Shown here: positions 16,751-62,967 of the stretch, one piece after another
Numbering within the stretch: the stretch's first letter is position 1
Layout: every line of letters begins with the position of its first letter
Assembly (NCBI GenBank): GCA_965240325.2
Contig: OZ251240.1
Location: forward strand, 992,001-1,056,000
Direction: 5' to 3'
From: Rebecca billardiae RCC1528
Taxonomy: Eukaryota; Protista; Haptophyta
Length of the DNA stretch: 64,000 nt
Notes under the pieces: generated by a model
What the model saw: only the letters and a program-made list of their open reading frames with translations
Database searches by the model: none
Told to the model about the DNA's origin: nothing
Made by a program: the position numbers and the translations under genes

Positions 16751-18370
16751 ATGGGGGAGGAGGAGAACGCCGCCGGCGAGGGCGACCACCCGACGGTGAA
16801 GAAGGCCGGCACCGCCATCGTCGCGAGCCAAGCGCTCGAGAAGAATGCGGCGCCGCCGACGTCGGTCAAGGTATGCCTGCGCGCGCGCGTGCGCGTGCAC
16901 TCGCGGCGCGCGCGGCGCGCGCGGCACGCGCACCGTTCGAGGCAAGGGTCGCGGCGCGGCGAAGCGCGCGGCGGCTCACTCGCGCGTCTGCCCTGCCACC
17001 TTGCTCTCCCTACTTTCAGGTGGCCGTCCGTGTCCGCCCGCAGAATCGTGCGCAGCGCCGCGCGGGCGCGTGGCGGGCGCGCGAGCGGCCGGCGCGGATG
17101 CCGAGCGCCTCCTGACGCGCGGCGTGCTCCCGGCGCCGGCGTGCGCGCAGCGCGCGAGATCTCGCAGGGGGAGGAGAACGTGGTGGACATGGGCGAGAAC
17201 GGTTACTGCTCGATCACCAACAAGAACGACCCGACGGGCAAGGTGCGCCGCGGCGCGCCTCGCGCGCTCGCGGCGCGCCGGCCGCACGCGCCGCGCTCGC
17301 GCCACTCACGCCACTCACGCCGCGCGCGCGCGCGCGCACGCGCGCTCGGCTCCGCGCTCGGTCGCGCGCAGATGCACGAGTTCACCTTCGACCACGCGTA
17401 CACCGAGGCCACCGAGCAGGCCACCGTGTACAACGACCTCGGCGCGCCCGTGCTGCACCGCGCGATCGCCGGCTGGAACGGTACCATCTTTGCGTACGGT
17501 CAGACGGGCTCGGGCAAGTCGCACTCGATGACGGGCCCGCCGACCGACCCGGGGATCATCCCGCAGCTCAACGACGAGATGTTCCGCCGCATCGGCGAGA
17601 TCAACGCCGCCGAGCCCGACCGCAAGTTCCTGGTGACGTGCTCGTTTATGGAGATCTATAACGAGGTGCTGTACGATCTGCTCGACCCTTCGATGAAGAA
17701 GGGGACGTCGAAGGACCGCTCGTACTCGCACCTCGACGTGAAGGAGCACCCGACGCTGGGCGTGTACGTCGCCGGGCTGCAGGAGATCGCCGTCGACTCG
17801 CACCACAAGATCAAGGAGCTGATGGACCAGGGCAACCAAATGCGCGCGGTCGCGGCGACCGCGATGAACGCGACCTCGTCGCGCTCGCACTCGATCTTCA
17901 TCATCCGGCTGCTGCAGAAGGAGGTGGTGGGCGGGCAGCAGAAGGACACGCGCGCGACGATCAACCTCGTCGACCTCGCCGGCTCCGAGCGCCAGGCCAA
18001 GACGGGCGCGACGGGCGAGCAGCTCAAGCAGGGCGCGAACATCAACAAGTCTCTCTCCGCGCTGGGCAACGTGATCAACGCGCTCGCGGAGCAGTGCAAG
18101 AAGCCGAACAAGAAGGTGTTCATCCCGTACCGCAACTCGAAGCTCACGCGCGTGCTGCAGGAGTCGCTCGGCGGCAACTCGGTCACCGTGATGCTCGCCG
18201 CGCTCTCGCCCGCCGCGTACAACTTTGACGAAACGCTCAACACGCTGCACTACGCCGAGCGGGCCAAGTCGATCCAGCTGAAGGCGCGGAAGAACACGCA
18301 GATGACGGAGGTGGGCCAGCTCAAGTCGCAGATCGAGGAGCTGCGCAAGCAGCTCGAGGAGGCGCAGAAG

Positions 18371-18411
<41 letters not shown>

Positions 18412-21400
18412 GGTCTCTGAGGAGGCGAAAGCGGAGCTGGAGACGAAGTATCAGGAGCAGCTTGCGGAGATGGACCTGGTGCTCAAGTCGCAGTTCGAGG
18501 AGAAGGCGCGGATCGCGAAGGAGCGCGAGGCGGAGCGGCAGGAGCTCATGCTCAAGCAGGCGGAGGAGAAGGAGGCGCTGCTGCGCGAGCAGGACGGACA
18601 GAGGCGCGCGGTGCTCGCCGCAGGCACGCGCGAGTGGGTGCGCGTGATCCTTCAGAACGCCCGCTCCGAGTCGGCGCCGTTCGCGCAGGCGATCGACGCG
18701 CTGAACGAGCAGCAGCTCAAGGCGCACGACCGGCTGGACGAGCAGCTCACCTTCATCGGCGTGCTCAAGACGGCGGTGCAGGCGGAGATCCGCACGTACG
18801 CGCGCACCGAGGCCGACCAGGCGTCGCTGCCGGTCGAGGAGCAGCTCGACGAAGCTTCGCGGAAAGTTCTGATGGACCAGATCCTGATCAAGCTGAAGAA
18901 CTTCAAGGAGGAGGCGGCGAAGGCGCTCAAGCTGCGCGAGGAGGTGGACGCCGTGCTCGGCCAGCTCGAGGCCGTCGTCGGCCAGCAGCGCGAGCAGATG
19001 CACGCGGAGCAAGAGGCGGCGCTCGCCGAAGAGTACGGCGAAGACACGCTCGGCCAGTACGAGCGGAAGCTTCGGGAGGACGCGCTCGCGCGCGTCGAGC
19101 GCGACTTCGAGCTGTTCTCGGAGTACGCGGCGGAGCACCGCGCCAAGATGCTCAACCCGATGGAGGACCCGACCGCCGTCTCCGCCATCAAGGAGCTGGC
19201 CTCCTCCCTTGACCTCACCGTGGGCGGCGAGCTCGGTCAGGTCGAGACGCGGCTCGCGGCACTCGAGGAGAAGGGGGCGGGCGCGGTCGACGCCGCGCAG
19301 CGCGAGGGGATGGCGAAGCGGGTGCAGGTGCTGCAGAAGGAGCAGAAGATCCTCAAGGAGGTGGCGACGCGCTCCGACCTCGCCAAGACGCTCCCCGCCA
19401 TCGTCCACGTCCTGCAAGGCGTGGTCACGCGCGCGGCCAAGCGGCTGACTGCCAAGGACAAGATGAAAGAGAAGACGCTGGCCGCCAAGGAGCAGCAGGT
19501 GCAGGACCTGCGCAAGGAGTCCGAGGCGATCCGGAAGGCGCTGTTCGACGAGAACGTCACGCTGAAGGAGGCGAACGAGCTGCTGTCGCAGGAGCTCGCC
19601 GCCGCGCGCGCGCACATCGCCGAGCTCGAGTCTTCGCTCTCGCTCGCGCGCGAGGCCGCCAACTCGGCCGCGGCCGCGGCCGCGGACGGCGGCGGCGGCG
19701 GCGCCGAGGCGCCGCGCGACGCGGCGGAGGTGGAGGCGGAGCGCGCCGAGCTGCTCGCGCGGATCGAGGCGATGGGCCGGCAGCTGTCCGAGGCGGGGCG
19801 CGCCGGCGCCAACGCCGACGACGACGGCGCCGCCGCGCACCGGCCCCCGGTCGTCACCGAGACGGTCACGGAGGAGGTCGCTCTTCTCGAGGATGGCGAG
19901 CGCGTGATCACGCGCGTCGTCACGCGCGACATCGTGCACGGCGGCGGCGGCGGTGGCGCTGGCGCTGGCGGGCAGGGGCAGCAGCCCGACGCGGCGGCGC
20001 TCGAGCTCGCGGAGCACGAGCGCTCCGCGTGGCGCGAGCTCGAGGCGCGCCTCCGCGCCGACGCGGACGCCGCGCGCTCGCTCGTCGAGGAGCGGGATGA
20101 AGCGCTTTCGCTCCGGGCGCTCGAGCTGGAGGAGGCGCAGGCGCGGATCGCCGAGCTGCTGCGCGGCGCGCCGGGCGGCGGCGGCGGTGGCGGCGAGGGC
20201 GGCGAGGGCAGCGAGCTCGAGATCCGCGGGATGGAGCTCGCCTCAAAGACGCGCGCGCTCGACGACCTCAGCCGCCAGCTGGCCGAACGAGACGCTGCGA
20301 TCGCCACGCTCGAGCAGCAGCTGCTGGCGGTGGCCGGCGCGGCGGACGAGCGCGACGCGCGCGCCGACGGCGGCGGCGGGCTGGGCGACGAGGGCGAGCC
20401 GGTGTCGCGCGGCGCGGCGCTCGCCGCGGCCGCCGCGCAGGCCGTCGCCGCCGCGGCGGGCGTGCACGACGGCGGTGCGGCGGAGGAGGCGATGGCGTCC
20501 GCCGCGGCCGCCGCCGTCGCCGCCGCGCTCGCCGACGGCGCCTCCGACGACCAGGCGCGCGCCGCGGCGATGGGCGCGGCGGCGGCGGCGCTGAAGGAGG
20601 CGGCGGGCCTCGAGCTCACGCCGGCGCAGCACCACGCCGCCGCCGACGCGCTCGCCGCCATTGACGCCGGCGTCGTCGCCGACGCGGCCGAGCACGCCGC
20701 CGCGGGCGGCGCGGGCGGCGGCGCGGGCGGCGGCGCGCACGCGCTCGGCAGCCGCGAGCAGCTGATTGTACGGGCGGCCGCGTTTGCCGCGGCGGCGGCG
20801 GTGGCGGCGGAGGGCGAGGAGCCGAGCGTGGAGGCGCGGCTCGCCGCGGCGCACGCCGCCGCCGAGGCCGTCGCCGCCGCCGCGCGCGCCGGGCACACCT
20901 CCGCCTCCGCGCTGAAGGGCGCGGCCGTGGACGCGGCGGTTGCGGCCGTCGGCGCGCACGCGGGCGCGGCGCTCGGCGCGGACGAGCGCGCGCGCGTCGC
21001 CGCGGCGGTGGACGCGGCGGCGGGCGTCGCGCCGGCGCACGCCGGGCTGTCCGCGTCGGACCGCGCGCTCGCCGCCGCCGCGGCGCAGGCCGCCGCCGAC
21101 TCGTCCGCCGCCCCGCTCAGCGGCGCGGCGCGCGAGCGTGTGGGGCGCGCGGCCGAGGCGGCGGTGGCGAGCGCGGCCGCGGACGGCGCGGACAGCGCGG
21201 CGCGCGCGGCCGCGGCGGCGAAGGCGGCGGTGCAGGCGGCGGCGCACGAGGCGGGCGGCGCGCCCGCCGACGCGGCCGCCGAGGCCGCCGTCGCCACCGC
21301 CGTGCGCGCCGTCTCCGAGGCGCAGCCCGGCTCTCACGCGGCCGCGCGCCGGCGCGCTCGGGTGATTGGCCTTGCGGCCGCGCGCGCCGCGGCGCTCGTG

Positions 21401-23663
21401 TCTGGCGCGGCGCTGAGCGATGCGCAGGGTGAGCACGTGGCGGCGCTGGCGGAGCGCGCGGTGCTCGGCGTGGCCGCGTCGGCGGCGGGCGGCGGGGCCG
21501 ACGCCGACGCGCGCGTGCTCGACGCCGCCGCCGACGCCGCCGCCGACGCCGTCGAGTTCGCCTCCGGCGCGCGGCTGGGCTCCGACGCGCGCGCGCGCAT
21601 CGCCGCGGCCGCGGCGGTCGGCGCCCGGCTCGCGGACGTCGCCGCGTCCGACGCGGGCTCGGGGCAGGCGCAGGCGCACGTCTCGGCGGCGGGGTACGTG
21701 AGCGGCGGCGCGCAGCCCGCGCCGCGCGCCGCCGCCGCCGCCGCGCTCGTCGCCGCCCTCGACGGGCGGGCGGGCGCAGGCGGGCTTGCCCTGGGCGCGG
21801 ACGCGCGCGCGCGCGTGTCCGCGGCCGCGGCGCGCGCGCTCGCCGACGCGGACGCCCGCGGGGAGATGCCGGCGTCGGCGGGCGCGCTCGCGGCGGAGGT
21901 GGCGGCGGCTGTGGAGGCGGCGCTCGCGGCGGAGGCCGGCGCCCCCCTCGACCCCGCGCACGCCGACGCCGTGCGGCTGCTCGCGGCGGTCGCGGCCGAG
22001 TCGAGCGGCGCGGCCGCGGCGGCGCACGCCGCGCCGCCCGCCGTCACCGCCGTCGCCCTCGCCGCCGTCTCCGCCGCGGCGGACGCGTCGGGCGTGCACG
22101 TCTCGGACGCGCAGCGCGCGCGCGCGCACGCGCTCGTCGAGCGCGCGATGCTCGCCGCGGGCGGCGGCGCGGACGTCTCCTCCGCCGCCGCGCACGCCGC
22201 GGCGGTGCAGGCCGCGTGCGCCGTCGTGGCTGAGGTGACGGGCGCGCCGGCACTGAGCGGCGAGCAGGTGGCGGCGGTGGAGGCGGCGGTGGCGCTGGCG
22301 TCGCGCGCGGCGCACGCCGCCGCGCCCGCGGCGGTGCGGATCCAGGCCGCCGCGCGCCGCCGCGCCGCCGTCACCGCCGCGGGCGCCGCGCACGCCGCCG
22401 CGCACGCCGCGGCGATCGCGGGCGGCGGCTCGCTAACTGCGGGCCAGCTCGCTGAGGTTCGGGCGGCGGCGGCGCACGCCATGGAGGAGGCGGAGGGGTC
22501 GGACGCGCTGGCGCAGCAGCGCGCGGCGGCGGCGGCGGCGGCGGACGCGATCGCGCTCGCCACCGGCACCTCGCTCGGCGAGGCCGAGCGCGCCGCGATC
22601 GCGCGCGCCGCCGCATTCGCCGCGGACACGGCGGATGCCGCCGCGCCCGAGCCAACGCCCGCCGCGCGCGCCGTTGCCGTCGCGGCGGCGCGCGCGGCGC
22701 TCTCGCTCGCCGCGGCGGCGCTCGACGGCGAGGGCGCGCAGCCGCCCGCGGCGGCGCGCGCCGCCGTCGAGGAGCGCGTGCTCGCCGCCGCGGGGCGCGC
22801 CTCCGCCGAGCCCGCCGACGCGCTTCATGCGCTTTTGGTCGAGACAGCAATCGCGGCAGTCGGCGGCGCGATGGGCGTGGCGCTGGACGAGGCGGCGGCG
22901 CGGCACGTGGCGGAGACGGCGCGCGTGGCGGCGGCGGCCGCGCCGGGCGCGGGCGGGCGGCGGCGCACGCTCACCGACGCCGCCGCCGCCGCCGACCCGA
23001 TGGCCGTGCGCATCCAGGCCGCCGCGCGGCGGCGCGCCGCGCGCGTGCGCGCCGCCGCGCGCGCCGCCGACGTGCCCCGCGCGCTCCCGCAGTCTGGCTC
23101 GAGCGGCGGCGGCGCGGCGGCGGCGGGCGGCGGCGGCGAGGGCGGCGCGCGCGGCAGCGGGCTGGACGAGAACCCGATCTTCGCGCAGCTCGCCAAGGCG
23201 CTCGGCGTCACCGGCGCCACCTCCGACTCGGGCGAGCAGCTGTATGCCGGCCTCCGACCAGACGAGCGCGCGCGCCTGCTCGAGATCGAGCTGAGATCGA
23301 AGGCTGCCGCGCTCACCGCGGCCGAGGACAAGATGGCGTCGCTGGTGCGCGAGAAGGCGGCGGCGGCGCGCTCGGCGGAGGAGGAGGTGTTCGCGCTCAA
23401 GTCCGAGCGGCTCGCGCTCAAGGAGACCGCGCTGCAGCACGAGGAGGCCGCGTATGCGGCGCAGGAGGAGAAGGCGCGGCTCGCACAGGCCAACTTGGAA
23501 CTTTCCGAGAAAGTCTTTTCGCTCGAGCAGCGGCAGCGGCTGCACGAGGAGCGCGCGGAGGCGGCGGAGGCCGAGCTCGCCGCGCGCCGGCTCTCGGGCG
23601 CGGCGGACGAGGCGTCCGCCGGCGCAGCCGACGCCAACGTCGACTCGGAGGTCGACGATCCCA

Positions 23664-23697
<34 letters not shown>

Positions 23698-24914
23698 GCC
23701 GTCGTCGCAGCTCGAGGCTGAGCTAGCGCGGCTGCAGCGCGAGCACGACGCTTTGGAGGAGGAGAAGTACACGCTGGCGGGCGACATCGAGGAGCTCGAG
23801 GCGGAGCTGGAGGAGGCGCACGCGCACGAGAAGGAGTACTACGAGCGGATGATGGAGCTGCAGGGCCTCGTCGACCGGCTGGGCGGCCACCGCGAGACAC
23901 TCGAGACGCAGCTCGCCACCGAACAGGAGAGGGTGCGCCGAGCGCAGCGGCGCCCGCGACAGCGCTGCGTGCTGTGCTGCGCGCTGTGTGTGCCGGCTGC
24001 GCGCGCGCGCGCGGCGGGTGCGCTGCGTCGTGTGGCGGGTGCCGCGCGTCTGCACACGCGTGTGCTGTGTGGCGCGCTGTGTGCGCGCGCGCGCGCGTGC
24101 GTGTGCGCGTCTTGCCTGTGCGCGCGCGTGCTCGCTGCGGCCAGCACGCGCCTCCCCCGCACGGCGCGCGCGCGGCGGCGTGCGCGGCGGGGCCGCACGC
24201 GCGCGCGCGCGCGCACACGCCCACACCCGCCTCGCCGCGCGCGCGCCCCTTCTCCGCGCGCACGGGGCCAGGCGGAGGGCCTCGCGCGCGAGAACGAGAG
24301 ACTCGATCGCACCGTCGCGCCCGCGGTCGGCGAGGACGACGACACGCTCTTCGACAACTTGCGGCGCGCGTCCGAGGAGAACGAGAGGTTCCAGCGGGAA
24401 ATCCGGCAGCTGCGCGCGCAGGTGGAGTACCTGTCGCACACGGTGGACGCGGAGGAGTCGGGCGGGCGCGGCGGCGGCGGGAGCGAGCGCCCCGCGCGCG
24501 CGGCGCGCGCCGACTCGCTCGGCGCCGCCGACGATGAGCTCACATACGCGAGCGCGCAGGAGTTCCAGGCGGCGCAGGCGGCGCTGCGCGAGGCCAAGCG
24601 CGAGGCGGAGTCTCGCGCGGAGCAGCGCGACGCGCACGCGCGCGCGGTCGAGCGCGAGCGCGACTCGCTCGTACGCCGCGTGCACGAGCTCGAGGCGGCG
24701 ATGTCCGGAGCGAAACTGGGCGACGCACAGGCCGCCGCCAAGCTCTCGCAGGCGCAGACGGAGATTCGAAAGCTCGAGGCGGCGATGCGCGAGCAGAGCG
24801 CCGAGCACGGGGCGCGGGAGGAGGTGCGTGCACGCACACACCGCGCGCGCGCCTTGTGCGTTGGATTTGTTTGCGTGGTCGGTGTGTTTGTGTTGCGTGA
24901 GCCACGGCACACGC

Positions 24915-25003
<89 letters not shown>

Positions 25004-25663
25004 TGGCTCGAGGCCCCACGCCGGCACCGCCGCCGCCGCCGCCGCCCGCATGGGCGTGCGTGCACCGGAGGCGGCGTGGCGCTGGCGCGCGCCCGCGGCA
25101 CGCGCGCGTCCGCGGCGCGCGGGGCAAGCGCCCGCCGCCGTGCGCCACCGCGCCGCGCCAAGCCGTGCCGCCTGACGCGCGCACGCCTGCGCGCTCGGGC
25201 CCTGCTGCTGCGCAGGAGCTCACCGAGCTGCAGGACAACATGTACACGCTCTCGACGCAGCTCGAGGAGGAGCAGGAGGCACGGGAGGCGCTCCACAAGG
25301 AGAAGGCGGAGGCCGAGGTGCGCGGCTGCTGAATTCCTTCTGAATTCCGTCTGGATTCCTTCTGAATTCATGACGCGCGCGGCGCGCGCGCGCAAGCCGC
25401 GAGCGACCGCCTGCCTGGCACGTCCGCCGCGCGAGCGCGCGCTGCGTGCGCGCGTGGCTGGCTGAGTGAGCGCCGTGCGACCACGCTGCGCATCACCCAC
25501 TGCGCGCGCGCGGACGCAGGAGCGCGCGCGCAAGGCGGAGGAGGCGGCGGATGGCCTCAAGACACTCCGCTCCGAACTGAGCTACCTCAAGAGCGAGCTC
25601 GACGACGAGCGCACCAAGCGCGAGAAGGTGGAGGCGCAGCTCAAGCAGGCGCTCGGCGGCTGA
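16751..25663 (+). CDS. Large N-terminal-motor kinesin (kinesin-3-like motor) with coiled coils and an Ala-rich insert; exons 16751-16870, 17020-17047, 17151-17242, 17372-23932, 24272-24823, 25216-25317, 25520-25663
   Basis: VKVAVRVRP (spliced), FAYGQTGSGKS P-loop, SSRSH, LVDLAGSER, INKSLSALGNVI, IPYRNSKLTRVLQESLGGN. Confidence 0.92.
24917..25002. repeat. (CCCGCG)n hexamer repeat inside a kinesin intron
   Basis: Seen directly; it produces the false PAPAPA tract in the ORF track. Confidence 0.9.
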
Positions 25664-50773: not shown

Positions 50774-53259
50774 TCACAGCAGCGACTCCTGCAGCGCGTC
50801 CTCGTCCGCCGCTGAACTGCTGGCAGTGTCGCGCTGCGGCCGCTCGGCACGGCGCACGCGTCGCGTGCGCACCACCATCCTCAGCTTGGTCACGACGAGC
50901 GCCAGCACGGCCGCAAGCGCGACGCAGCCCACGAAGAGCTCGAGCAGCGCCCACTGCGCCGCCCACGTCCGCTGTGCGCGCGCGTCGCCGCGGCGCACGC
51001 TGTCCCAGGAGAGACGCAGCGCGGGCGCACGCCCAAGTGGGGCGTGCTCGGCACCACTCGCGCCCGTGTCTACATCGGCTGCGGCTGCGGCTGCGCCCGG
51101 TGCCCGGCTCGGCTTGAAGAGGTTGAGGTCCTCCAGCCCGGTGAGGGTGCCCAGCTCTGTGGGCAGCATCCCGCTGAGCGGGTCGTCGTCCACCTCGAGA
51201 CTGCTCAGCGCCGTCACACGGCCCAGCTCGGTGGGCAGTGCGCCCGTCAGCGCGTTGCCATCCACCTGGTGTCGGAGAGGCGGCGGCGTGTGGGCGCGCG
51301 GCAGGAGGGTGCGCAGGCACGCGGGGCGCGCGGGGCGTGCGCAGCGAGGGGCGGCGCGCGTGAGCGCGCGTCGGCTGCCGCTCGCTCGCAGGCGAACGCT
51401 CCGCCGGCGGCCGGTGGGCCACGCGCGCTAGCCGCCGCGAGCAGCGCGCGCGCTTGCGCGCGCGCTTTTTGGCGCGGGCATTCGCGCGCGCGCGGCACCG
51501 CGCTCACGTTCAGGTCCGTGAGCACGCTCAGCTCGCCGAGCTCGGTGGGCAGCGCGCCGCCGAGCCGGTTGGACGACACGTCCAGCTCGAGCAGCTCCGT
51601 CAGCTCGCCCACCGAGCGCGGCACCGAGCCGCTGAGCGCGTTGCCGCCGAGGTCCAGCACAAGCAGCGAGCTCAGTCGGCCGAGGGTCTCGGGGAGAGTC
51701 CCGCTCAGCCGGTTGTTTGCCGCACAGAGGGAGGTGAGGAGGGTGAGGCTGTCGAAGAGCGCGGGGGGCAGGCTGCCGTTGAGCGCGTTGTCGCTCAGCC
51801 CGAGCACGCTCAGCGCGCTCAGCCGCGCGAGGCTGGGCGGCAGCGACCCCGTGAGCGCATTCGCTCCGAGCAGCAGCGAGCGCGCGGCCGTAAGCGCGCC
51901 AAGCGAAGGTGGCACTGTGCCGACAAGGGCGTTGTGCGCGCCGCCGAGGCTGGTGAGCAGCGTGAGGCCGGAGAGCTCGGTGGGCAGCGTGCCGCTCAGC
52001 CGGCACTCGGAGGCGTCCACGACCGTCAGCTCGCCCAGCCCGCCCACCTCCGTCGGCACCGCGCCGCCCAGCGCCGGATTGGAAGCCAGCAGCAGCCGCG
52101 ACAGCGCCGTGAGCTCGCCAATCTCGGTAGGCAGTGAGCCGCTCAGATCGTTGGACTCGAGCTGGGCAGCGGCGGGGAAGGGAGGAGGAGGGTGCGGTCG
52201 GAGGCGGGTAGCCGTCGCGGGGCGGCGGGCGCGCACGGCCGACGCGCGAGCAGGCGTGCGAGCGCCCGGCACTTGCGGCCGCGGGCGGTTCGCGGCCGCG
52301 CGCGCACACGGCGCGCGGCCGCGCGCATGCTGTGCGCCGCGCGGCGCGGTGTAGGGACCCCGTGCGTGCGCGCGCGCGCGCGCGGCGCGCGGCGCGCGGC
52401 GCGCGGCGCGCACATTGAGCTCGCGCAGCCGCTTCATCCCGCCCACCAGCGTCGGGATCGGCCCGCGCAGCGCGTTGCCGCCCACGCGCAGCGCGGTCGC
52501 CGCGTGCAAGCGTCCAAGCTCCGATGGCAGCGGTCCGCCGAGTCCGTTGCCCTCGAGCGAGAGCTCGCGCAGCTTGGGCAGCCGGCCGAGGGTGGTGGGC
52601 AGCGAGCCGCGCAGCGCGTTCCCCGCGAGCTTGAGCGCCTCGAGCAGCGGCATCGACGCGGGCAGCTCGGGCGGCACCGAGCCGGTGAGAAGGTTCTCAT
52701 CGAGAAGCAGCTGCTGCAAAGAGCCGAGCCCTGAGAAGGCCACGGGCAGCGTGCCGCTGAGCTCGTTGGCCGAGAGCCCGAGCCTGCCCAGGAGCGTGAG
52801 CCGGCCGAGCTCTGCGGAGAGGCGCGGCGCGGCGCACGCGCGCGCCGTCGCGCCGGGGTGAGCGTGTGCCGCGCTCGGCCGCGCGCGCGCGCGCGCGCAC
52901 GCCAGCGCGCAACAGGCGCATGCGGGCGCGCTGCGAGCGCGCATGGCGCGCGTGGCGCGCCCCGCCGCACGGTGCCGGCGGGCTGCGCCGCACCTGAGGG
53001 CAGCTGCGCGCTCAGCACGTTCTCCTTGAGCTCGAGCTGCCTGAGCTTGTGCAGCAGCCCCAGCTCCGACGGCACCGGGCCCATCAGGTTGTTCTCCGCC
53101 ATCGCCATCGCCTGCAGCTCGCGCGCTCGGCCCAGCTCCGTCGGCAGTAGCCCCGTGAGCTCGTTGGAGCCGAGCTGCGAGGGCGCACGCGCGCGCGCGG
53201 AGCGGGGGCGGGTGGACGGGCGGGGCAGACACGCGCGAGGATGCACGCGCGCGCAGACG

Positions 53260-53297
<38 letters not shown>

Positions 53298-54522
53298 AAC
53301 ACAGGGGGCGGGGGCACGCACGCAGCCGCGGGTGAGGGCGGCAGGGACGGAAAACACGCACGCGGGCGTCAGCAAAAACGCGTTCAGTACGGGCGCAAAT
53401 CAAAGCCGCACCGCCGCGCGGGCGCCGCGCCCCCTGCGTGCCGGGCGAGCGCGCGCACGTTGAGCTCCGTCAGGTTGCCCAGGTTGCCGATCTCCGGCAC
53501 GAGCGAGCCCACGAGCTTGTTCTCGCCGAGGTTGAGCGCGCGCAGTGACGAGAGCTGCCCAGCCTCGCACGGCAGCGTGCCGGAGAGGGAGCAACCGGCG
53601 CAGTTGAACACCTCCAGCCGGCTGAGCCCGCCGATGTGCGGCGAGATCGTGCCCGAGATACTGTTGGCCTCGAGCTCGAGCACGCGCAGCCGCGTCAGGC
53701 TCGACAGCTGCGGCAGCGTGCCCGTGAGCGCGCACGCGTTCGAGCGCAGCTCACGCAGCGCCGCCATGCCGCCAAGCTCGTGCGGCAGCGAGCCGCGCAG
53801 CCGCGCGTTGCCGTTCAGCTGGAGCACGCCCAGGTCGCGGAGGAGGCCGAGCTCGGCTGCGGCCGGGGTGGGTGGGTGGTGCGTCGGGCGAAGCGCGGGG
53901 CGACGTGGTACGCGGGCGAGCGGGCGGCGGCAGCGGAATCGTCGGTGGGGGCGGTGGCGGGGGGTCGGCCGATGCGCATCAGTACCGGGTGTGCCGCCAT
54001 GCGCGGAGCAGGGCGCGAGCCGACGGCCGTCGTGGGCTGCGCGTGGCGCGCAGCGTACTTGTGACGGTGCCACTGAGCTCGTTCTTGGCGAGGTGCAGCT
54101 CCTGCAGCTGCACGAGCCTTCCCCTGCAGATGGGAACGATCGCAGCGCCGCGCAGCAGCGCCGAGCGCCGCGCGTGCAGCCGAGGGCGTGAGCGCGCTGC
54201 GAGGGGCGCACGGGCGCCGCGCGGGCCCGACGGTGTCGTATCGCGCGCACAGCTCGGTCGGGATCGTGCCCGTGATGGCGTTCTTCGAGAGCGAGAGCAC
54301 GGTGAGCGCGACCAGCAGTCCGAGCTCGCTCGGAACGGACGACGTGACGGCGTTCTCGTCCAGGTCGATTTTCTTGAGGTGCGTCATGTGGCCGAGCTCT
54401 GTCGGGATACGCCCAGTCGTGCGGAAGAAGGCGGACACGGGCTGAGCCGCGAGCAGCGCAGGATGCAGCTCATCGTCCGCGTGTTCTCGCGCGGCCGCGG
54501 CGGCCGCGGCGGTGAGCCCCAT
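50774..54522 (-). CDS. LRR receptor-like protein (about 30 plant-type LRRs, C-terminal TM, short tail); exons ~54251-54522, 54059-54123, 53459-53856, 52994-53174, 52414-52811, 51508-52161, 50774-51265; start uncertain
   Basis: Repeated LxxLxLxxNxLSGxLPxELG; TM segment WALLELFVGCVALAAVLALVVT followed by basic residues. Confidence 0.85.
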
Positions 54523-54657: not shown

Positions 54658-55965
54658 ATGGCCGCCGCGCGGCTGGCGCTCGCAGTTGCACTGCTGCAGC
54701 CCTCACCCGGCGCCTCGGCCGGTTTTTGGAAGGCCGTGCGGCACGCCGTCGGACCGCTCGGCCTTGAGACGCGCCATGTCGCCGACCCTGTGCCCGTTCT
54801 GCCCGCGGGCCTCTCGTTTGCGACCGTCGAGCTCGCGCAGCGCTCCGGTGGCGCGCGCGAGCTGGCGCGCTTCCTCTCCGAGCACTACCAGGGCGACGAC
54901 GCGTTCGCCGTGCGCCAGCCCTCCGCACGGCTACGATGGGTGCTCCGCGCCCCCGCCATGCGCGCCGACTGGGCATTGTGCGTGCGTGACCAGCGCAGCG
55001 GCGGCCGTCTGGTCGGCTTTGTCGCAGCCGTCCCGCGCGCGCTGTGGCTCGACGGCGCGCAAGTCGACGGCGTGGAGGTGTGCTTCCTCTGCGTGCACCC
55101 GGGGTACCGTGGGCGCGGGCTCACGCCGCTCCTGCTCCGCGAGCTCGCGCGCCGGCTCGCGCGCCACGGCGTGCGCGTGGCCGTGTACACGGGAAGCAAG
55201 CGACTACCCGGCGCGCTTGCTGAGGCGCGGTACTACCACCGGCCGCTGCAGCCGCTGCGGCTGGCTCGCAGCGGGTTCGTCGAGGTGGAGCCCGCCTTCG
55301 TGCACCTGTACGCGCTCCACTTCCGCCTGCCCCGCCGCACGGCCACCGCGGGCCTCAGGCCGATGCGCAAGGCCGACATCGCGCAGTGCGCGCGGCTGCT
55401 AGATAGCGCGCACGCGCGCGCGCGGCTCGGACTCCGCTACCGCTCGCCCGCCGAGCTGGCGCACTGGCTCCGGCCGCGCGCGCGCGAGCAGATGGCGGCG
55501 TACGTCGTGGACGAGCGCGCCACGGGCGCCGTCCGCGCCGTCGTCGCCTTCTCGCTCTCCACGGCCGTGCGCACCTGCGCCGCCGCGAACGCGACGCCAT
55601 CGGACCGCACGCGCGCGCCGTGGTGGGCTCGGCCAGTGTCGGCGGTGCGCGGGCTGTGGCCGCGCGCGAGCGTGCGCGGCGCAGTTCTGCACGTGCTCGC
55701 CGCGGACGCGTCGGTCGATGTGGCCGAGCTGCTCCGCGACGCCAGCGTCCTCGCGCGGCGGCGTGGCTGCCACGTCCTCAGCGCGCTCGAGTCGCACACC
55801 ACGCCGCGCGCGGCGCTCGGCGCCGCCAAGTTCCGCGAGGGCGACAACTCCCTCCACTTTTACCTGTACAACTATGGCCTCGCGGCCGTCAGGGCGGCGA
55901 TCAGAGGGCGCGGCGGCGGCGGCCCCGTGATGCCTGCGGGGAGCGTGGCGCTGATGCCCGTCTGA
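54658..55965 (+). CDS. Divergent N-myristoyltransferase-like protein with a hydrophobic N-terminal leader
   Basis: FLCVH..RGRGLTPLLLREL, AVYTG, YYHRPL, GLRPM, KFREGD..LHFYLYNY. Confidence 0.85.
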   Translation: MAAARLALAVALLQPSPGASAGFWKAVRHAVGPLGLETRHVADPVPVLPAGLSFATVELAQRSGGARELARFLSEHYQGDDAFAVRQPSARLRWVLRAPAMRADWALCVRDQRSGGRLVGFVAAVPRALWLDGAQVDGVEVCFLCVHPGYRGRGLTPLLLRELARRLARHGVRVAVYTGSKRLPGALAEARYYHRPLQPLRLARSGFVEVEPAFVHLYALHFRLPRRTATAGLRPMRKADIAQCARLLDSAHARARLGLRYRSPAELAHWLRPRAREQMAAYVVDERATGAVRAVVAFSLSTAVRTCAAANATPSDRTRAPWWARPVSAVRGLWPRASVRGAVLHVLAADASVDVAELLRDASVLARRRGCHVLSALESHTTPRAALGAAKFREGDNSLHFYLYNYGLAAVRAAIRGRGGGGPVMPAGSVALMPV

Positions 55966-57480: not shown

Positions 57481-60400
57481 TCAGCCCATGGCTGGCGGAA
57501 CACACCCGGGTGGGCACTTGGGCTTGACGAAACCGCCAAAGAGTAGAGTATGGCCACCGTTCAGCATCCGCTTCTGCCGCCCACGACGGATGCGCACACA
57601 CTCAGCGGGGCAAGTGACACTTGGGGTAGGTGTGGGCTTGACGTCTGGTGCTGGCGTCGGCGTCGGCGTCGGCGCCAGCCCAACCTGCACGTCGGCAGGC
57701 GCGGCGGTGGGACGGCGCAGGGGGCGAAGGCGCGCGTCGCGCGTCAAAGGGCGCGCAGTGCAAGCACGCGCCTGGAACGCTGGGCGCACTGCGCACCGGC
57801 AGGGGCGGCGGCGACGGCGGTGGCGGTGGCGGCGGCGGCGAGGGAGGAGGCGAAGGTGGTAGCGGCGGCAGCGGCGGCGGCGGCGAGGGCGGCGGCGTGG
57901 GTGGCGGTGCGTCTGGGAGCGTCGCCGGCCTGACGGCAGGATAGCCGTGCGTGCCACCCGGGTGCCACATCTGCGTGCCGAAGACATTCCTGCAAGCAAG
58001 TGTCGATGGTACCGATGCGCGGTGACGGGGTGAGGGCACAGAGGAACACGTGGCAGCGTCAGCGGCGGGCAGGGCAAGCGTGGCGCGGCGTCGGATCGCC
58101 GGGGGCACGCTAGGACAGGCTCAAAGCACGAGCGCCGCCGCCTCTCGGCCCCGCCTATTCCTCCTGCCGCACGTACATCTCATACATAAACGTCATGAGG
58201 CCGATCTCACTTGGAAGGGTGCCATCGAACGAGTTGTCGCTCACAGCCCTGCGCAGCGCGTGAGTTGCATGCACAGACGCAGAGCACTCGAGCGGGCGGT
58301 CAGGCTCGGCATGGCGAGCACCAGCTATGCGCTCGCGTGGCTGGCAAGAATATGGAGCGCCACCACCACCAGCGCCCCTGGCCGGCGCTCAGGGAATGGC
58401 CGCGCATACATCCGCTCCATAGCCGTCATGAGGCCGATCTCGCTTGGAAGGGTGCCATCGAACGAGTTCAAGGACACATCCCTGCGCAGCGTGTGGTGGC
58501 GTGCACAAACGCACAGCACACGAGCGGGCGGTCAGGCTCGGCAGGGCAAGCACCGCGCTGCGCGCTCGCGTGGCCGGCAAGACTCTGTAGCACCACCACC
58601 ACCAGCACCCCTGGCCAGCCCTCAGTGATGGTCGCGCGTACATCTGCCGCATAGCCGTCATGAGGCCGATTTCACTTGGAAGGGTGCCATCGAACGAGTT
58701 GTCATTCACCAGCCTGCGCAGCGCGTGAGTTGCATGCACAGACGCAGAGCACACGAGCGGGCGGTCAGGCTCGGCAGGGCGAGCGCCGCGATATGCGCGC
58801 GCGTGGCTGGCAAGAATATCTAGTAGCACCACCACCACCAGCACCCCTGGCCGGCCGATGGTCGCGCGTACATCTCAACCATAGCCGTCATGAGGCCGAT
58901 CTCACTTGGAAGGGTGCCGCCGAACGAGTTGTAGTTCACAGACCTGCACAGCGCGTGGTGGCGCGCACAAACACACAGCACGCGAGCGGGCGGTCAGGCT
59001 CGCGCAGGGCGAGAGCAGCGCTATGCGCTCGCGTGGCTGGCAAGAATATGTAGCACCACCACCAGCAGCACCCCTGGCCAGCCCTCAGTGATGGTCGCGC
59101 GTACATCTGCCCCAGAGCCGTCATGAGGCCGATCTCACTTGGAAGGGTGCCATCGAACGAGTTGAAGATCACCACCCTGCGCAGCGCGTGAGTTGCATGC
59201 ACAGACGCAGAGCACACGAGCGGGCGGTCAGGCCCAGCAGGGCGAGCACCTCGCCGCGCGCTCGCGTGGCTGGCAAGACTCTGTAGCACCACCACCACCA
59301 CCACCCCTGGCCCGCAATCAGTGATGGTCGCGCGTACATCGACTGCAGAGCCGTCATGAGGCCGATCTCACTTGGAAGGTTGCCATCGAACGAGTTGAAG
59401 TGCGCATACCTGCGCAACGCGTGGTGGCGTGCACAAGCGCATAGCACGCGAGTAGGCAGTCAGGCTCGGCAGGGCGAGCGCTGCGATGTGCGCGCGCGTG
59501 GCTGGCAAGAATATCTAGTAGCACCACCACCAGCAGCACCCCTGGTCTGCCCTGGGTGATGGTCGCGCGTACATCTCCGTCAGAGCCGCCAAGGTGCCGA
59601 TCTCACTTGGAAGGGTGCCATCGAACGAGTTGGTATTCACACCGCTGCGCAGCGCGTGGTGGCATGCACAAACGCACAGCGCACGCATGGGCGGTCAGGC
59701 TCGGCAGGGCGAGCGCAGCGATGTGCGCGCGCATGGCTGGCAAGAATATCTAGTAGCACCACCACCAGCAGCACCCCTGGCCGGCCGATGGTCGCGCGTA
59801 CATCTCAACCATAGCCGTCATGAGGCCGATCTCACTTGGAAGGGTGCCGCCGAACGAGTTGTCGACCGCAGACCTGCGCAGCGCGTGAGTTGCATGCACA
59901 CACTCGCAGCACACGAGCGGGTGGTCAGGCTCGGCAGGGCGAGCGCCGCGATATGCGCGCGCGTGGCTGGCAAGAATATCTAGTAGCACCACCACCACCA
60001 GCACCCCTGGCCAGCACTCGGTGCATGGTCGCGCGTACATCCGCGACAGAGCCGTCAGGAGGCCGATCTCGCTTGGAAGGGTGCCAGAGAACGAGTTGGA
60101 GTCCAAAGACCTGCGCAGCCGGAGTGGCGTGCACAAACGCACAGCGCACGCGTGGGCGGTCAGGCTCGCGCAGGGAGAGCGCCGCGCTGTGTGCTCGCGT
60201 GGCTGGCAAGAATATGTAGCACCGCCACCCCCCAGCACCTCTGGCCCGCGCTCAGTGATGGTCGCGCGTACATGTACGTCAGAGCCGTCATGAGGCCGAT
60301 CTCACTTGGAAGGGTGCCATCGAAAAAGTTGGATGGCGAATTCCTGCGCAGCGCGTGGTGGCGTGCACAAACGCATAGCACGTGAGTGGGCGGTCAGGCT

Positions 60401-61952
60401 CGGCAGGGCGAGCGCCTCGCTGTGCGCTCGCGTGGCTGGCAAGAATATGTAGCATCGCCACCACCCCCAGCACCTCTGGCCCGCGCTCAGTGATGGTCGC
60501 GCGTACATCAGCACCATAGCCGTCAGGAGGCCGATCTCGCTTGGAAGGGTGCCAGAGAACGAGTTGGCGAACACAGTCCTGCACAGCGCGTGAGTTGCAT
60601 GCACACACGCAGAGCACACGAGCGGGCGGTCAGGCTCGGCAGGACGAGCGCCGCGATATGCGCGCGCGTGGCTGGCAAGAATATCTAGTAGCACCACCAT
60701 CACCAGCAGCACCCCTGGCCGGCCGATGGTCGCGCGTACATCTCAACAATAGCAGTCATGAGGCCGATCTCACTTGGAAGGGTGCCATCGAACGAGTTCA
60801 AGTTCACAGACCTGCACAGCGCGTGGTGGCGCGCACAAACACACAGCACGCGAGCGGGCGGTCAGGCTCGCGCAGGGAGAGCGCCGCGCTGTGTGCTCGC
60901 GTGGCTGGCAAGAATATGTAGCACCGCCACCCCCAGCACCTCTGTCCCGCGCTCAGTGATGGTCGCGCGTACATGTACGTCAGAGCCGTCATGAGGCCGA
61001 TCTCACTTGGAAGGGTGCCATCGAAAGAGTTGGATCGCAATTTCCTGCGCAGCGCGTGGTGGCGTGCACAAACGCATAGCACGTGAGTGGGCGGTCAGGC
61101 TCGGCAGGGCAAGCGCCTCGCTGTGCGCTCGCGTGGCTGGCAAGAATATGTAGCACCGCCACCCCCAGCACCTCTGGCCCGCGCTCAGTGATGGTCGCGC
61201 GTACATGTACGTCAGAGCCGTCATGGTGCCGATCTCACTTGGAAGGGTGCCAAACAAGTTTTCGGTCACAGTCCTGCGCAACGAGTGGCGTGCGAACACA
61301 GCGGGCAGGCAAGGACGGAGAAGCCGCGTCAGCGCACGCTGCCCGTTCGTCGCAGCTGCCTACTGCCAGGCGACCGCACGACTGCGTGCAGAAGCGCACG
61401 GCGCGAGCCCTGCTGCTGTGGCCGTCTCGGTTGGTTGGTCGCAGAGGACACGTGCAGTCTCGCACTGGTGCGCGTCCTATCGCCGCTGCGTGCTCATTGG
61501 CTGGCTGGCTGGCTGCCCCCGCGCGCGCCGCGCCGTGCGCGTACAGCTCGGTCAGGGCGGTCAGCGTCCCGATCTCAGTTGGCATCGTGCCAGTGAGGCC
61601 TGAAAAGTCCTCCTGCGCACGTGCGACGCACGCGCGGCGAGTCGCAGATGGTGGGCCAGGCGACCGTGTGGCGAGCGCGTCATCACTCCTCGCGGCAGCG
61701 CATGCCGATTGCCGTCGCACGCATGTGCGGCATGGCCGCTCGCCGGCTCGCGCGCCATGAGCCAAGGTTTGCCGCGCCGTCGCGATGGGCGCGGGCGCCT
61801 CGCGCACGCGCGACAGCCGCGACACGCACATTGATGCTTGTGCACGCAGCCGGGCTGGCGATGCAGTTCGTGTAAGCGGTGCTGGTCTCGAAAGGGACGG
61901 CGGCAGCCGCGCCCGACGCCAGCAGACTTATCGTCACGAGCGCGACACCCAT
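57481..61952 (-). CDS. Secreted LRR protein, ~530 aa, 18 exons: 61830-61952, 61545-61612, 61205-61273, thirteen 72-bp exons (60973-61044, 60740-60811, 60507-60578, 60272-60343, 60039-60110, 59802-59873, 59573-59644, 59338-59409, 59105-59176, 58872-58943, 58642-58713, 58410-58481, 58177-58248), 57797-57989, 57481-57684; alternative ATG at 61988
   Basis: Signal peptide MGVALVTISLLASGAAAA, Cys cap CIASPAAC, 15 LRRs of type xVxxNSFDGTLPSEIGLMTAxxxM, Pro-rich stalk, Cys-containing tail. All junctions are GT-AG and the summed CDS of 1593 nt is in frame. Confidence 0.85.
58177..61273 (-). repeat. Tandem exon+intron cassette array, period ~229-237 bp, 14 exons
   Basis: Recurring ccgatctcacttggaagggtgcc (exon) and gcggtcaggctc...gcgtggctggcaaga...atggtcgcgcgtac (intron). 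Confidence 0.95.
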
Positions 61953-62159
61953 GGCATGCCGCAGCCCCGTCGTCACGCTGGTGGGCATGGGCCTTGATGC
62001 GGCTGAAAGATGGTCGCGTGCAGATCTGGCGCACCGGCGCGGAGGCACCCGCCCTCGGCCCTCGCAGGTCGCCGCGAAGATTCTACTAGGTGCGGCAACG
62101 CGCCAGCACTCACCTGTTGCGCCGGTCTGTTTTGTGGCGGTGTCGTTGTGCACTACTGT

Positions 62160-62298
62160 TTACTAAGAATAAGAGACGCACACAGCTCATCAGGCAGGCG
62201 AGATTGACGCCCGCCAACTGTTGGCGGGCTACGGCCCTTGGGCGGGCGTCATCAATCTCGCCTGCCTGAGCTGTGTGCGTCTATAATATTCTTAGTAA
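62160..62298. other. ~140-bp imperfect inverted repeat (MITE-like or RNA hairpin)
   Basis: Left arm ttactaagaat..agacgcacacagctc..caggcaggcgagattgacgcccgcc pairs with ggcgggcgtca..tcaatctcgcctgcctgagctgtgtgcgtct..attcttagtaa. Confidence 0.85.
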
Positions 62299-62967
62299 GC
62301 TGTGTTGGATCATGGTTGGATTATATTGCGTCAATCACGCCTGCTGCATGAACCAAGCGTGCACGTTAAATAATCAGCGCATAGGAAATCACGCCTTAAC
62401 CAACATAACCAAGTTGAAAGTGTGCACGTTAAAGCACGTATGATTTAATAACGACATAGGTCGTAAAGTATTGAGAGTTGAGACGACGACGGCTCAAGGT
62501 CTCCTGATTCGTCGCAATGGCCCTTTTCCCTTATGGCGGGCTATTATATTCCCCCCCGTGACGACGATTCAGGAGAACCCGCCGATGTGCGGCTTGTTGT
62601 CGTATGGGGGGGGTTGGGTTTTGTATATGGGGGGGGTAAAACCACCCCTCGCGGAGAGGCTCAGGGACGGACGCAAAGATGGGCATGCACTCCCCTCCGG
62701 CCCTCGCCGTCGAGCGGTCGAGGACAATCCGGAGGACGCCCGTGTCGGTATGGCACCCGCTGGGGCCGGGTCGCCGCGGCCGCACATGCTCGCGCAAGGC
62801 GCCTTTGAAAATGATGACCCCAAACGACCCCAGCCCAAAACTAACCCGGGGGGCGCGTGCGCACGCACGGCGCGGGCTTCGTCTGGGCAGCCTGCGACCA
62901 TAAGCAGCCTGGCAGCAGTGCGTCGGCCGTCGTGGTGAACCGATGATCCATCTGATGCGGCTGCGGC

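Follow-up and report, generated by a model that had tools for sequence, protein, structure and literature searches.

A leucine-rich repeat gene with one repeat per exon in the haptophyte Rebecca billardiae: mosaic repeat units and fast-evolving exposed codons

Leucine-rich repeat exons in other organisms and in Rebecca billardiae

Leucine-rich repeats (LRRs) that are each encoded by an exon of their own have been described in brown algae. In Ectocarpus, where each such repeat is a 72-nucleotide (nt) exon, Zambounis et al. (2012, PMC3341825) reported that exons had been shuffled intensely and that residues on the repeat's concave side were under positive selection, and proposed somatic recombination; Teng et al. 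(2024, PMC11378527) extended the analysis to four brown algae and reported alternative transcripts with differing combinations of LRR exons. Two registers were distinguished in Ectocarpus (PMC3341825): type I (GxxP...NxLx) is the shuffled one and is found mostly in cytosolic ROCO GTPases, while type II (xLxxNxL...LxxL) was reported from LRR-kinases and a further eight loci, where sites 3 and 23 were under selection but there was "no tangible sign of exon shuffling". Here we describe a gene of this one-LRR-per-exon design in the haptophyte alga Rebecca billardiae RCC1528. It lies on the minus strand of a 64,000-nucleotide stretch of contig OZ251240.1 (positions 992,001 to 1,056,000; GenBank assembly GCA_965240325.2), referred to below as the window, and all positions are counted from the first letter of that window.

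The splice model of the gene comprised 17 exons, running from 61988 to about 57602 or 57481: an exon for a signal peptide and a cysteine pair, one 68-bp LRR exon, one 69-bp LRR exon, thirteen 72-bp LRR exons, and a proline-rich tail exon (Table 1). The model reproduced the thirteen 72-bp exons, the 68- and 69-bp variants and the CAG acceptors described in an earlier reading of the DNA made without database searches (the sequence-only reading), together with its full list of exon-start and exon-end peptides. The reading frame was open across the 17 exons, and the canonical splice sites were uniform. Acceptors within the array were all CAG and donors were GTACGC, with the exception of GTATGC after exon 15 and GTACGT after exon 16; the first exon ended at a GTGCGT donor in phase 0, junctions within the array were in phase 2 throughout, and a CTGAC branch-point-like motif was present in each array intron. 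Because the unit is a 72-nt phase-2 exon, each duplication or exchange stays in frame, and the description of the cassettes as frame-neutral held for the 72-nt exons and the 69-nt exon, which are in phase 2 at both ends. Only one array intron, that between exons 8 and 9, has a length that is a multiple of three; retention of any of the others would shift the frame. The signal peptide (by hydrophobicity only), the cysteine cap and the proline-rich stalk that had been noted earlier were also seen, and the tail reached 75% proline over 40 residues, with four SP(3-8) motifs.

The likeness to the brown-algal LRR exons is close: a 24-residue LRR per 72-nt exon, symmetric phase, duplication and shuffling, and selection on the concave face. 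The register found here (xLxxN...LxxL) is type II and not type I, and the two sites reported as selected in Ectocarpus type II exons coincide with hypervariable positions in this gene. However, the type-II-register array is clearly dynamic here, so that a register reported as static in Ectocarpus is not static in this alga. The gene also differs from its brown-algal counterparts in that its protein is predicted to be secreted and to carry a proline-rich stalk, with no ROC-COR, NB-ARC or kinase domain found; in that the genome, like the window, has a guanine-plus-cytosine (GC) content of about 70%, a composition not known from brown algae; and in that the introns and the 64-kb window showed no orphan exons, whether inverted or inactivated. 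The shuffled one-LRR-per-exon design would thereby be extended beyond brown-algal cytosolic ROCO genes to a secreted (predicted) LRR protein of the plant type in a very GC-rich alga. The gene adds a clean case that can be quantified, in a lineage and a type of protein new to the design, and it bears on the long-standing idea of "algal adaptive immunity". The suggestion that the cassettes operate in the manner of VLR or Dscam, made for this locus by the sequence-only reading, is not new, as it has been published for brown-algal LRR exons (PMC3341825, PMC11378527).

Several other systems share part of this organization. The Tetrahymena genome contains about 72,000 LRR exons, each exactly 90 bp long and flanked by phase-2 introns, which were ascribed to unequal crossing-over and exon shuffling (2019, PMC6564038). 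Both systems have many LRR exons of uniform length between phase-2 introns, whereas the 90-bp exon, the 30-residue LRR, the ciliate host and the association with non-LTR elements set Tetrahymena apart; no analysis of exposed-residue hypervariability comparable to the one below was retrieved for its LRR exons. The 24-residue plant-specific LRR consensus is shared with plant RLPs, PGIPs, LRR-RKs and LRX proteins (PMC7132299), and the succession of signal peptide, capped LRR domain and proline-rich extensin-like segment recalls LRX, a likeness in layout only. Unlike LRX, the primary model of this gene is missing a C-terminal cap and the cysteine-rich hinge that would separate LRRs from stalk, and at about 45 residues its stalk falls short of the long Ser-Pro(3-5) extensin domain. 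Lamprey VLR and insect Dscam resemble it in having modular cassettes whose combination would alter a binding surface. The hallmarks of VLR, a germline gene that is incomplete, donor cassettes on its flanks and somatic assembly by copy choice, were not seen here, and the docking/selector RNA pairing that accompanies the mutually exclusive exon clusters of Dscam was not detected.

Analysis of the repeat itself placed it in a large family. The 72-nt unit encodes xVxxNSFDGTLPSEIGLMTALxxM, in which, after rotation, each of the 11 fixed positions in the 24-residue plant-specific LRR consensus, LxxLxxLxLxxNxLxGxIPxxLGx, holds the expected residue class. A 31-column profile of the LRR exons was searched against 1.84 billion protein representatives and matched 7,260 of them at E ≤ 0.001, including 44 at E ≤ 1e-30; the best match had E = 6e-120, and the best matches were about 46% identical to the spliced model. 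Among the matches were products with Pfam LRR_14/LRR_8, encoded in a eukaryotic NCBI assembly by a gene with few introns and also on a bacterial-looking contig. The best sequence match in the PDB was the ectodomain of a plant LRR receptor-kinase, AT5G25930 (E = 1e-4), and a Pfam scan of single 31-residue units gave no match. The repeat family is thus very widespread, and it is the packaging of one repeat per exon that is special in this gene, the protein of which was absent from the searched protein collections. A proline-rich segment was found in none of the 150 closest family representatives.

No metagenome contigs of the same species were found, as all 37 loci recovered came from other organisms (GC 0.36-0.59). 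One marine metagenome locus, Ga0115102_10477294 (193-1184, 38% GC), also contained 72-nt one-LRR exons, with the same GT[LI]PSEIG motif and with mutually similar introns of ~110 nt. Its introns, which are in phase 1, follow LxL. This third register differs from those of this gene and of Ectocarpus type I, and the one-LRR-per-exon design therefore probably arose several times independently. Plants offer a further precedent for one LRR per exon.

A protein of 2,440 residues, from a 48-kb bacterial-looking contig (ENA sample ERZ25071132) on which it is flanked by luciferase-like monooxygenase genes, contained 36 near-identical LRR copies of the GxLPTEIGNLTNL type together with Calx-beta. The repeat class is therefore highly homogenised in a prokaryotic context too, in an array that has no introns.

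Exposed codons, introns and recombination among units

In plant extracellular LRR proteins the xxLxLxx positions are hypervariable and under diversifying selection, and in textbook LRR structures, from which the mapping used here was taken, the exposed positions of this motif lie on the concave sheet. In the Rebecca gene, the intron cuts the LxxL/xLxxN strand between the second and third bases of the codon at the first Leu position of LxL, which is Met here. Because the cut lies inside LxL, the upstream exon supplies two of the exposed xxLxLxx residues and the downstream exon the other three. The splice model thus bore out the earlier proposal that the intron splits the beta-strand and leaves exposed residues at both exon ends.

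Comparison of all unit pairs showed that these five codons diverge far more than anything around them. Mean divergence was 0.117 in the introns, 0.09 at the 57 non-exposed exon positions and 0.078 at core third positions, versus 0.60 at the five exposed codons, which run about five times faster than the intron clock. Since the core of the exon diverges like the intron, core and introns both tick neutrally, without special conservation. The introns had earlier been called nearly constant, but their pairwise identity was 82-99%, with a mean of 88%, and exon positions that are not exposed diverge just as fast. The array is a clean natural experiment, in which the introns serve as an internal neutral clock for five fast codons per repeat.

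The excess was mostly in replacements. By the Nei-Gojobori method, the proportions of nonsynonymous (pN) and synonymous (pS) differences were 0.67 and 0.35 at the five exposed codons, a ratio of 1.9, and 0.064 and 0.104 at the 16 core codons. With this ratio above 1 at the five x positions, one outcome that the sequence-only reading had named as refuting its proposal, a dN/dS not above 1 there, did not occur. To limit non-independence, six disjoint nearest-neighbor pairs of units were also compared. In these pairs, 38 of 90 exposed-codon sites differed, versus 76 of 956 sites in the flanking halves of the introns (odds ratio 8.5, p = 3e-16), and the remainder of the exon (28 of 342 sites) was indistinguishable from intron. 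Where two units had the same amino acid at an exposed position, the codon was identical in 35 pairs versus 8, and the GC content at third positions of the exposed codons was equal to that of the core. The shared codons and the equal third-position GC argue for selection on replacements rather than local hypermutation. Diversifying selection on the exposed positions is well supported by these repeat comparisons.

The array introns were found to be chimeric, with segments identical to those of different partner units. For example, in the intron between exons 4 and 5, the 5' segment was closest to intron 3-4, the middle was identical to intron 7-8, and the 3' end was identical to intron 12-13. 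All four gametes were present at 76 of 231 informative site pairs in the array introns, and exposed-codon divergence showed no correlation with flank divergence. This mosaicism, which supports the earlier suggestion that the units have recombined, is the footprint expected from repeated unequal crossing-over and short-tract conversion within the array. Germline exon duplication and shuffling are well supported. Neither exons nor introns of the array had copies outside 58.1-61.7 kb in the window, which reaches just 2 kb beyond the 5' end of the gene. An introner or dispersed-intron origin was also considered and was ruled out, as the array intron had no other copy in the window.

Probable germline reshuffling and the alternatives to it

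From the observed anatomy, divergence contrast, mosaicism and family membership, this is probably a conventional germline gene for a secreted or wall- or surface-attached LRR protein, the array of which has been reshuffled in the germline under diversifying selection. The protein would consist of a signal peptide, a two-cysteine cap, 15 plant-type 24-residue LRRs and a proline-rich extensin-like stalk. In the LRR domain, units of exon plus intron would form a young tandem array, which expanded and is still being reshuffled by germline unequal crossing-over and short-tract gene conversion. Since the intron lies inside LxxL/xLxxN, an exchange within an intron or within the conserved core of an exon joins the two halves of a binding strand in new pairings. 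The five solvent-exposed x positions of xxLxLxx would be the target of diversifying selection, with scaffold and introns drifting neutrally, and diversity would arise over evolutionary time, among repeats, paralogues and probably alleles, and not within one individual. For similar arrays, published accounts invoke positive selection together with either the shuffling of exons or unequal crossing-over (PMC3341825, PMC11378527, PMC6564038). On the protein model, the product is predicted to be secreted and to bind a ligand with its concave face, and it may act in recognition or adhesion; the gene is presumably transcribed and spliced.

Several observations weigh against this explanation. Selection was estimated from paralogous repeats that undergo gene conversion, which breaks tree-based assumptions, and pS was itself raised at the exposed codons, which could reflect older ancestry or path-counting artefacts. 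No transcript was seen: in the read runs compared, a DNA run (share 0.05) and a marine metatranscriptome (share 0.04), the reads matched to the locus were of low complexity only, apart from one identical 251-bp DNA contig. No close protein was found either, as a 102-residue reference made up of exons 8 and 9 and the in-frame intron between them had just two weak matches. An internal transmembrane-like segment preceded the LRRs in 84 of the 150 closest family representatives, so that a signal anchor may stand where a signal peptide was predicted. Finally, the C-terminus is ambiguous, with one model stopping at 57602 and another reaching a tail at 57481 through a candidate intron.

Combinatorial alternative splicing is an unlikely alternative, although it is the best placed of those considered. 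Under this explanation cassettes would be skipped in varying sets, so that one gene gives many LRR ectodomains, as in the Ectocarpus ROCO genes, where up to nine LRR-exon combinations occur in annotated transcripts (PMC11378527). The 14 symmetric exons (69 and 72 nt) could each be skipped in frame, and the splice sites are so nearly identical that any donor could join any downstream acceptor. However, the array introns are only 157-165 nt long, and for introns of this size intron definition generally favors sequential removal or retention over skipping. Docking and selector pairing was examined as well. Whole-length RNA duplex energies were uninformative in such GC-rich RNA and were replaced by a longest-complement test with dinucleotide shuffles, which considered perfect stems only: perfect complements of an array intron with one of the three unique introns ran to 7-11 nt at most, versus 8-9 nt in the shuffles. 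Complementarity was therefore no better than in the shuffled controls, which speaks against the Dscam-like system that had been envisaged. The fold of the intron consensus had no compensatory pairs and the array introns had no Rfam match, which also argues against this alternative, and on the same grounds an intronic small RNA or conserved intron structure was ruled out.

Slightly less probable is a purely structural wall or matrix protein, an LRX-like scaffold in which the number of repeats matters and specificity does not, so that the variable positions are simply unconstrained. The order of signal peptide, LRR domain and SPPPP-type stalk does resemble the plant LRR-extensin layout (PMC7132299), and neither the tail nor the 1.5 kb beyond it showed a signalling domain. 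Pfam domains were absent from both versions of the tail and from the minus-strand open reading frames (ORFs) in the 1.5 kb before the convergent N-myristoyltransferase (NMT) gene, and the earlier statement that there is no kinase therefore holds for the DNA at hand. Nevertheless, unconstrained sites should match the intron rate of about 0.08-0.12, whereas the exposed codons diverged by 0.42-0.60, with changes that were overwhelmingly amino-acid-altering.

It is improbable that the gene is an unexpressed or decaying copy, the product of a recent array expansion without function. Such a copy would fit the lack of expression in the matched reads and the missing product in protein collections, but all 17 exons are open, the splice sites are intact, CTGAC is retained in every array intron, and the pN/pS of the core is 0.61. 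In addition, absence from the databases reflects a genome that appears unannotated here, as even the neighboring NMT gene was found only in a raw Logan contig.

Even less weight is given to a within-individual repertoire of secreted recognition proteins, generated by regulated exon skipping or mitotic recombination. If it existed, each new exon junction would make a new binding strand by virtue of the intron-split beta-strand, and the gene would be part of a diversified recognition system that evolved in a eukaryotic microbe independently of animals. The weakest explanation, somatic recombination like that of VLR, in which cells rearrange or copy cassettes into individual receptors, is very improbable: it has been raised as a hypothesis for brown algae (PMC3341825) and the homologous, recombination-prone, mosaic units would permit it, but the germline gene is complete, spliceable and directly expressible, each cassette bears the splice sites that donor cassettes of VLR lack, the rest of the window, which reaches just 2 kb beyond the 5' end of the gene, contained neither orphan nor donor cassettes, and germline unequal exchange leaves mosaicism anyway. 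In summary of the earlier proposal, germline cassette shuffling under diversifying selection is supported; operation in the manner of VLR or Dscam finds no support and is partly contradicted. This alga is a suitable organism in which to ask whether protist cassettes serve on the evolutionary timescale alone or during the life of an individual as well.

Gene coordinates and neighborhood

The extent first given for the gene, 57481-61988, stood at its 5' end, where an ATG is located; the 57481 end applies only if the predicted intron near the 3' end is real. A "compensated frameshift" between exons 4 and 7 was also considered and was ruled out, as the differences are three point substitutions.

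Table 1. Features of the one-LRR-per-exon gene and nearby features, in window positions
Feature	Positions	Strand	Details
Exon 1	61830..61988	-	159 nt; ATG at 61988; hydrophobic signal-peptide-like segment (residues ~13-30); C-x6-C N-terminal cap
Exon 2	61545..61612	-	68 nt; first LRR, degenerate; starts in phase 0 and ends in phase 2
Exon 3	61205..61273	-	69 nt; LRR one codon short; phase 2/2
Thirteen 72-nt LRR exons	58177..61044	-	phase 2 at both ends; homologous introns of 157-165 nt between them
72-nt LRR exons, 1st-5th of array	61044-60973, 60811-60740, 60578-60507, 60343-60272, 60110-60039	-	
72-nt LRR exons, 6th-10th of array	59873-59802, 59644-59573, 59409-59338, 59176-59105, 58943-58872	-	
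72-nt LRR exons, 11th-13th of array	58713-58642, 58481-58410, 58248-58177	-	
Tandem repeat (Tandem Repeats Finder)	58191..61252	-	period 233 bp (also 465), 13.1 copies, 83% matches, score 3818
Intron 8-9	59874..60038	-	165 nt, multiple of three, stop-free; retention in frame, would insert 55 residues
Exon 17	57602..57989	-	short linker, then proline-rich SPPPP-type stretch; continuous frame stops at 57602
Candidate extra intron	57685..57796	-	112 nt, GTGCGC...GTGCAG, phase 0; would join the proline-rich frame to the TP-rich tail
Alternative last exon	57481..57684	-	67 residues, TP-rich, four Cys, no Pfam match; depends on the candidate 112-nt intron
Neighboring LRR gene	51247-54300	-	Pfam LRR_1/LRR_8/LRR_14
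N-myristoyltransferase ORF	54658-55965	+	apparently single-exon; convergent to the LRR-exon gene
AT-richer island	62140-62350		about 150 nt upstream of the ATG
Fold-back arms	62155-62210 and 62267-62351		~150 nt self-complementary at 77%
Kinesin-containing ORF	16751-25465		long ORF; GC up to 82% at 20001-24000, versus a window mean of about 70%

The window contains ordinary eukaryotic genes, among them kinesin, Timeless, Vps52 and NMT. The neighboring LRR gene belongs to the same plant-type class, but its repeats are contiguous, with several per exon, and much more diverged, which indicates that both gene designs coexist side by side. For the NMT ORF, the nearest clusters in the ESM Atlas feature space were dominated by NMTs of Nucleocytoviricota, which serves as a lead only. 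The AT-richer island upstream of the LRR-exon gene forms a long imperfect fold-back that has no other copy in the window, and it may be a miniature inverted-repeat transposable element or a fold-back transposon in the promoter. The GC peak listed in Table 1 lies inside the long kinesin-containing ORF.

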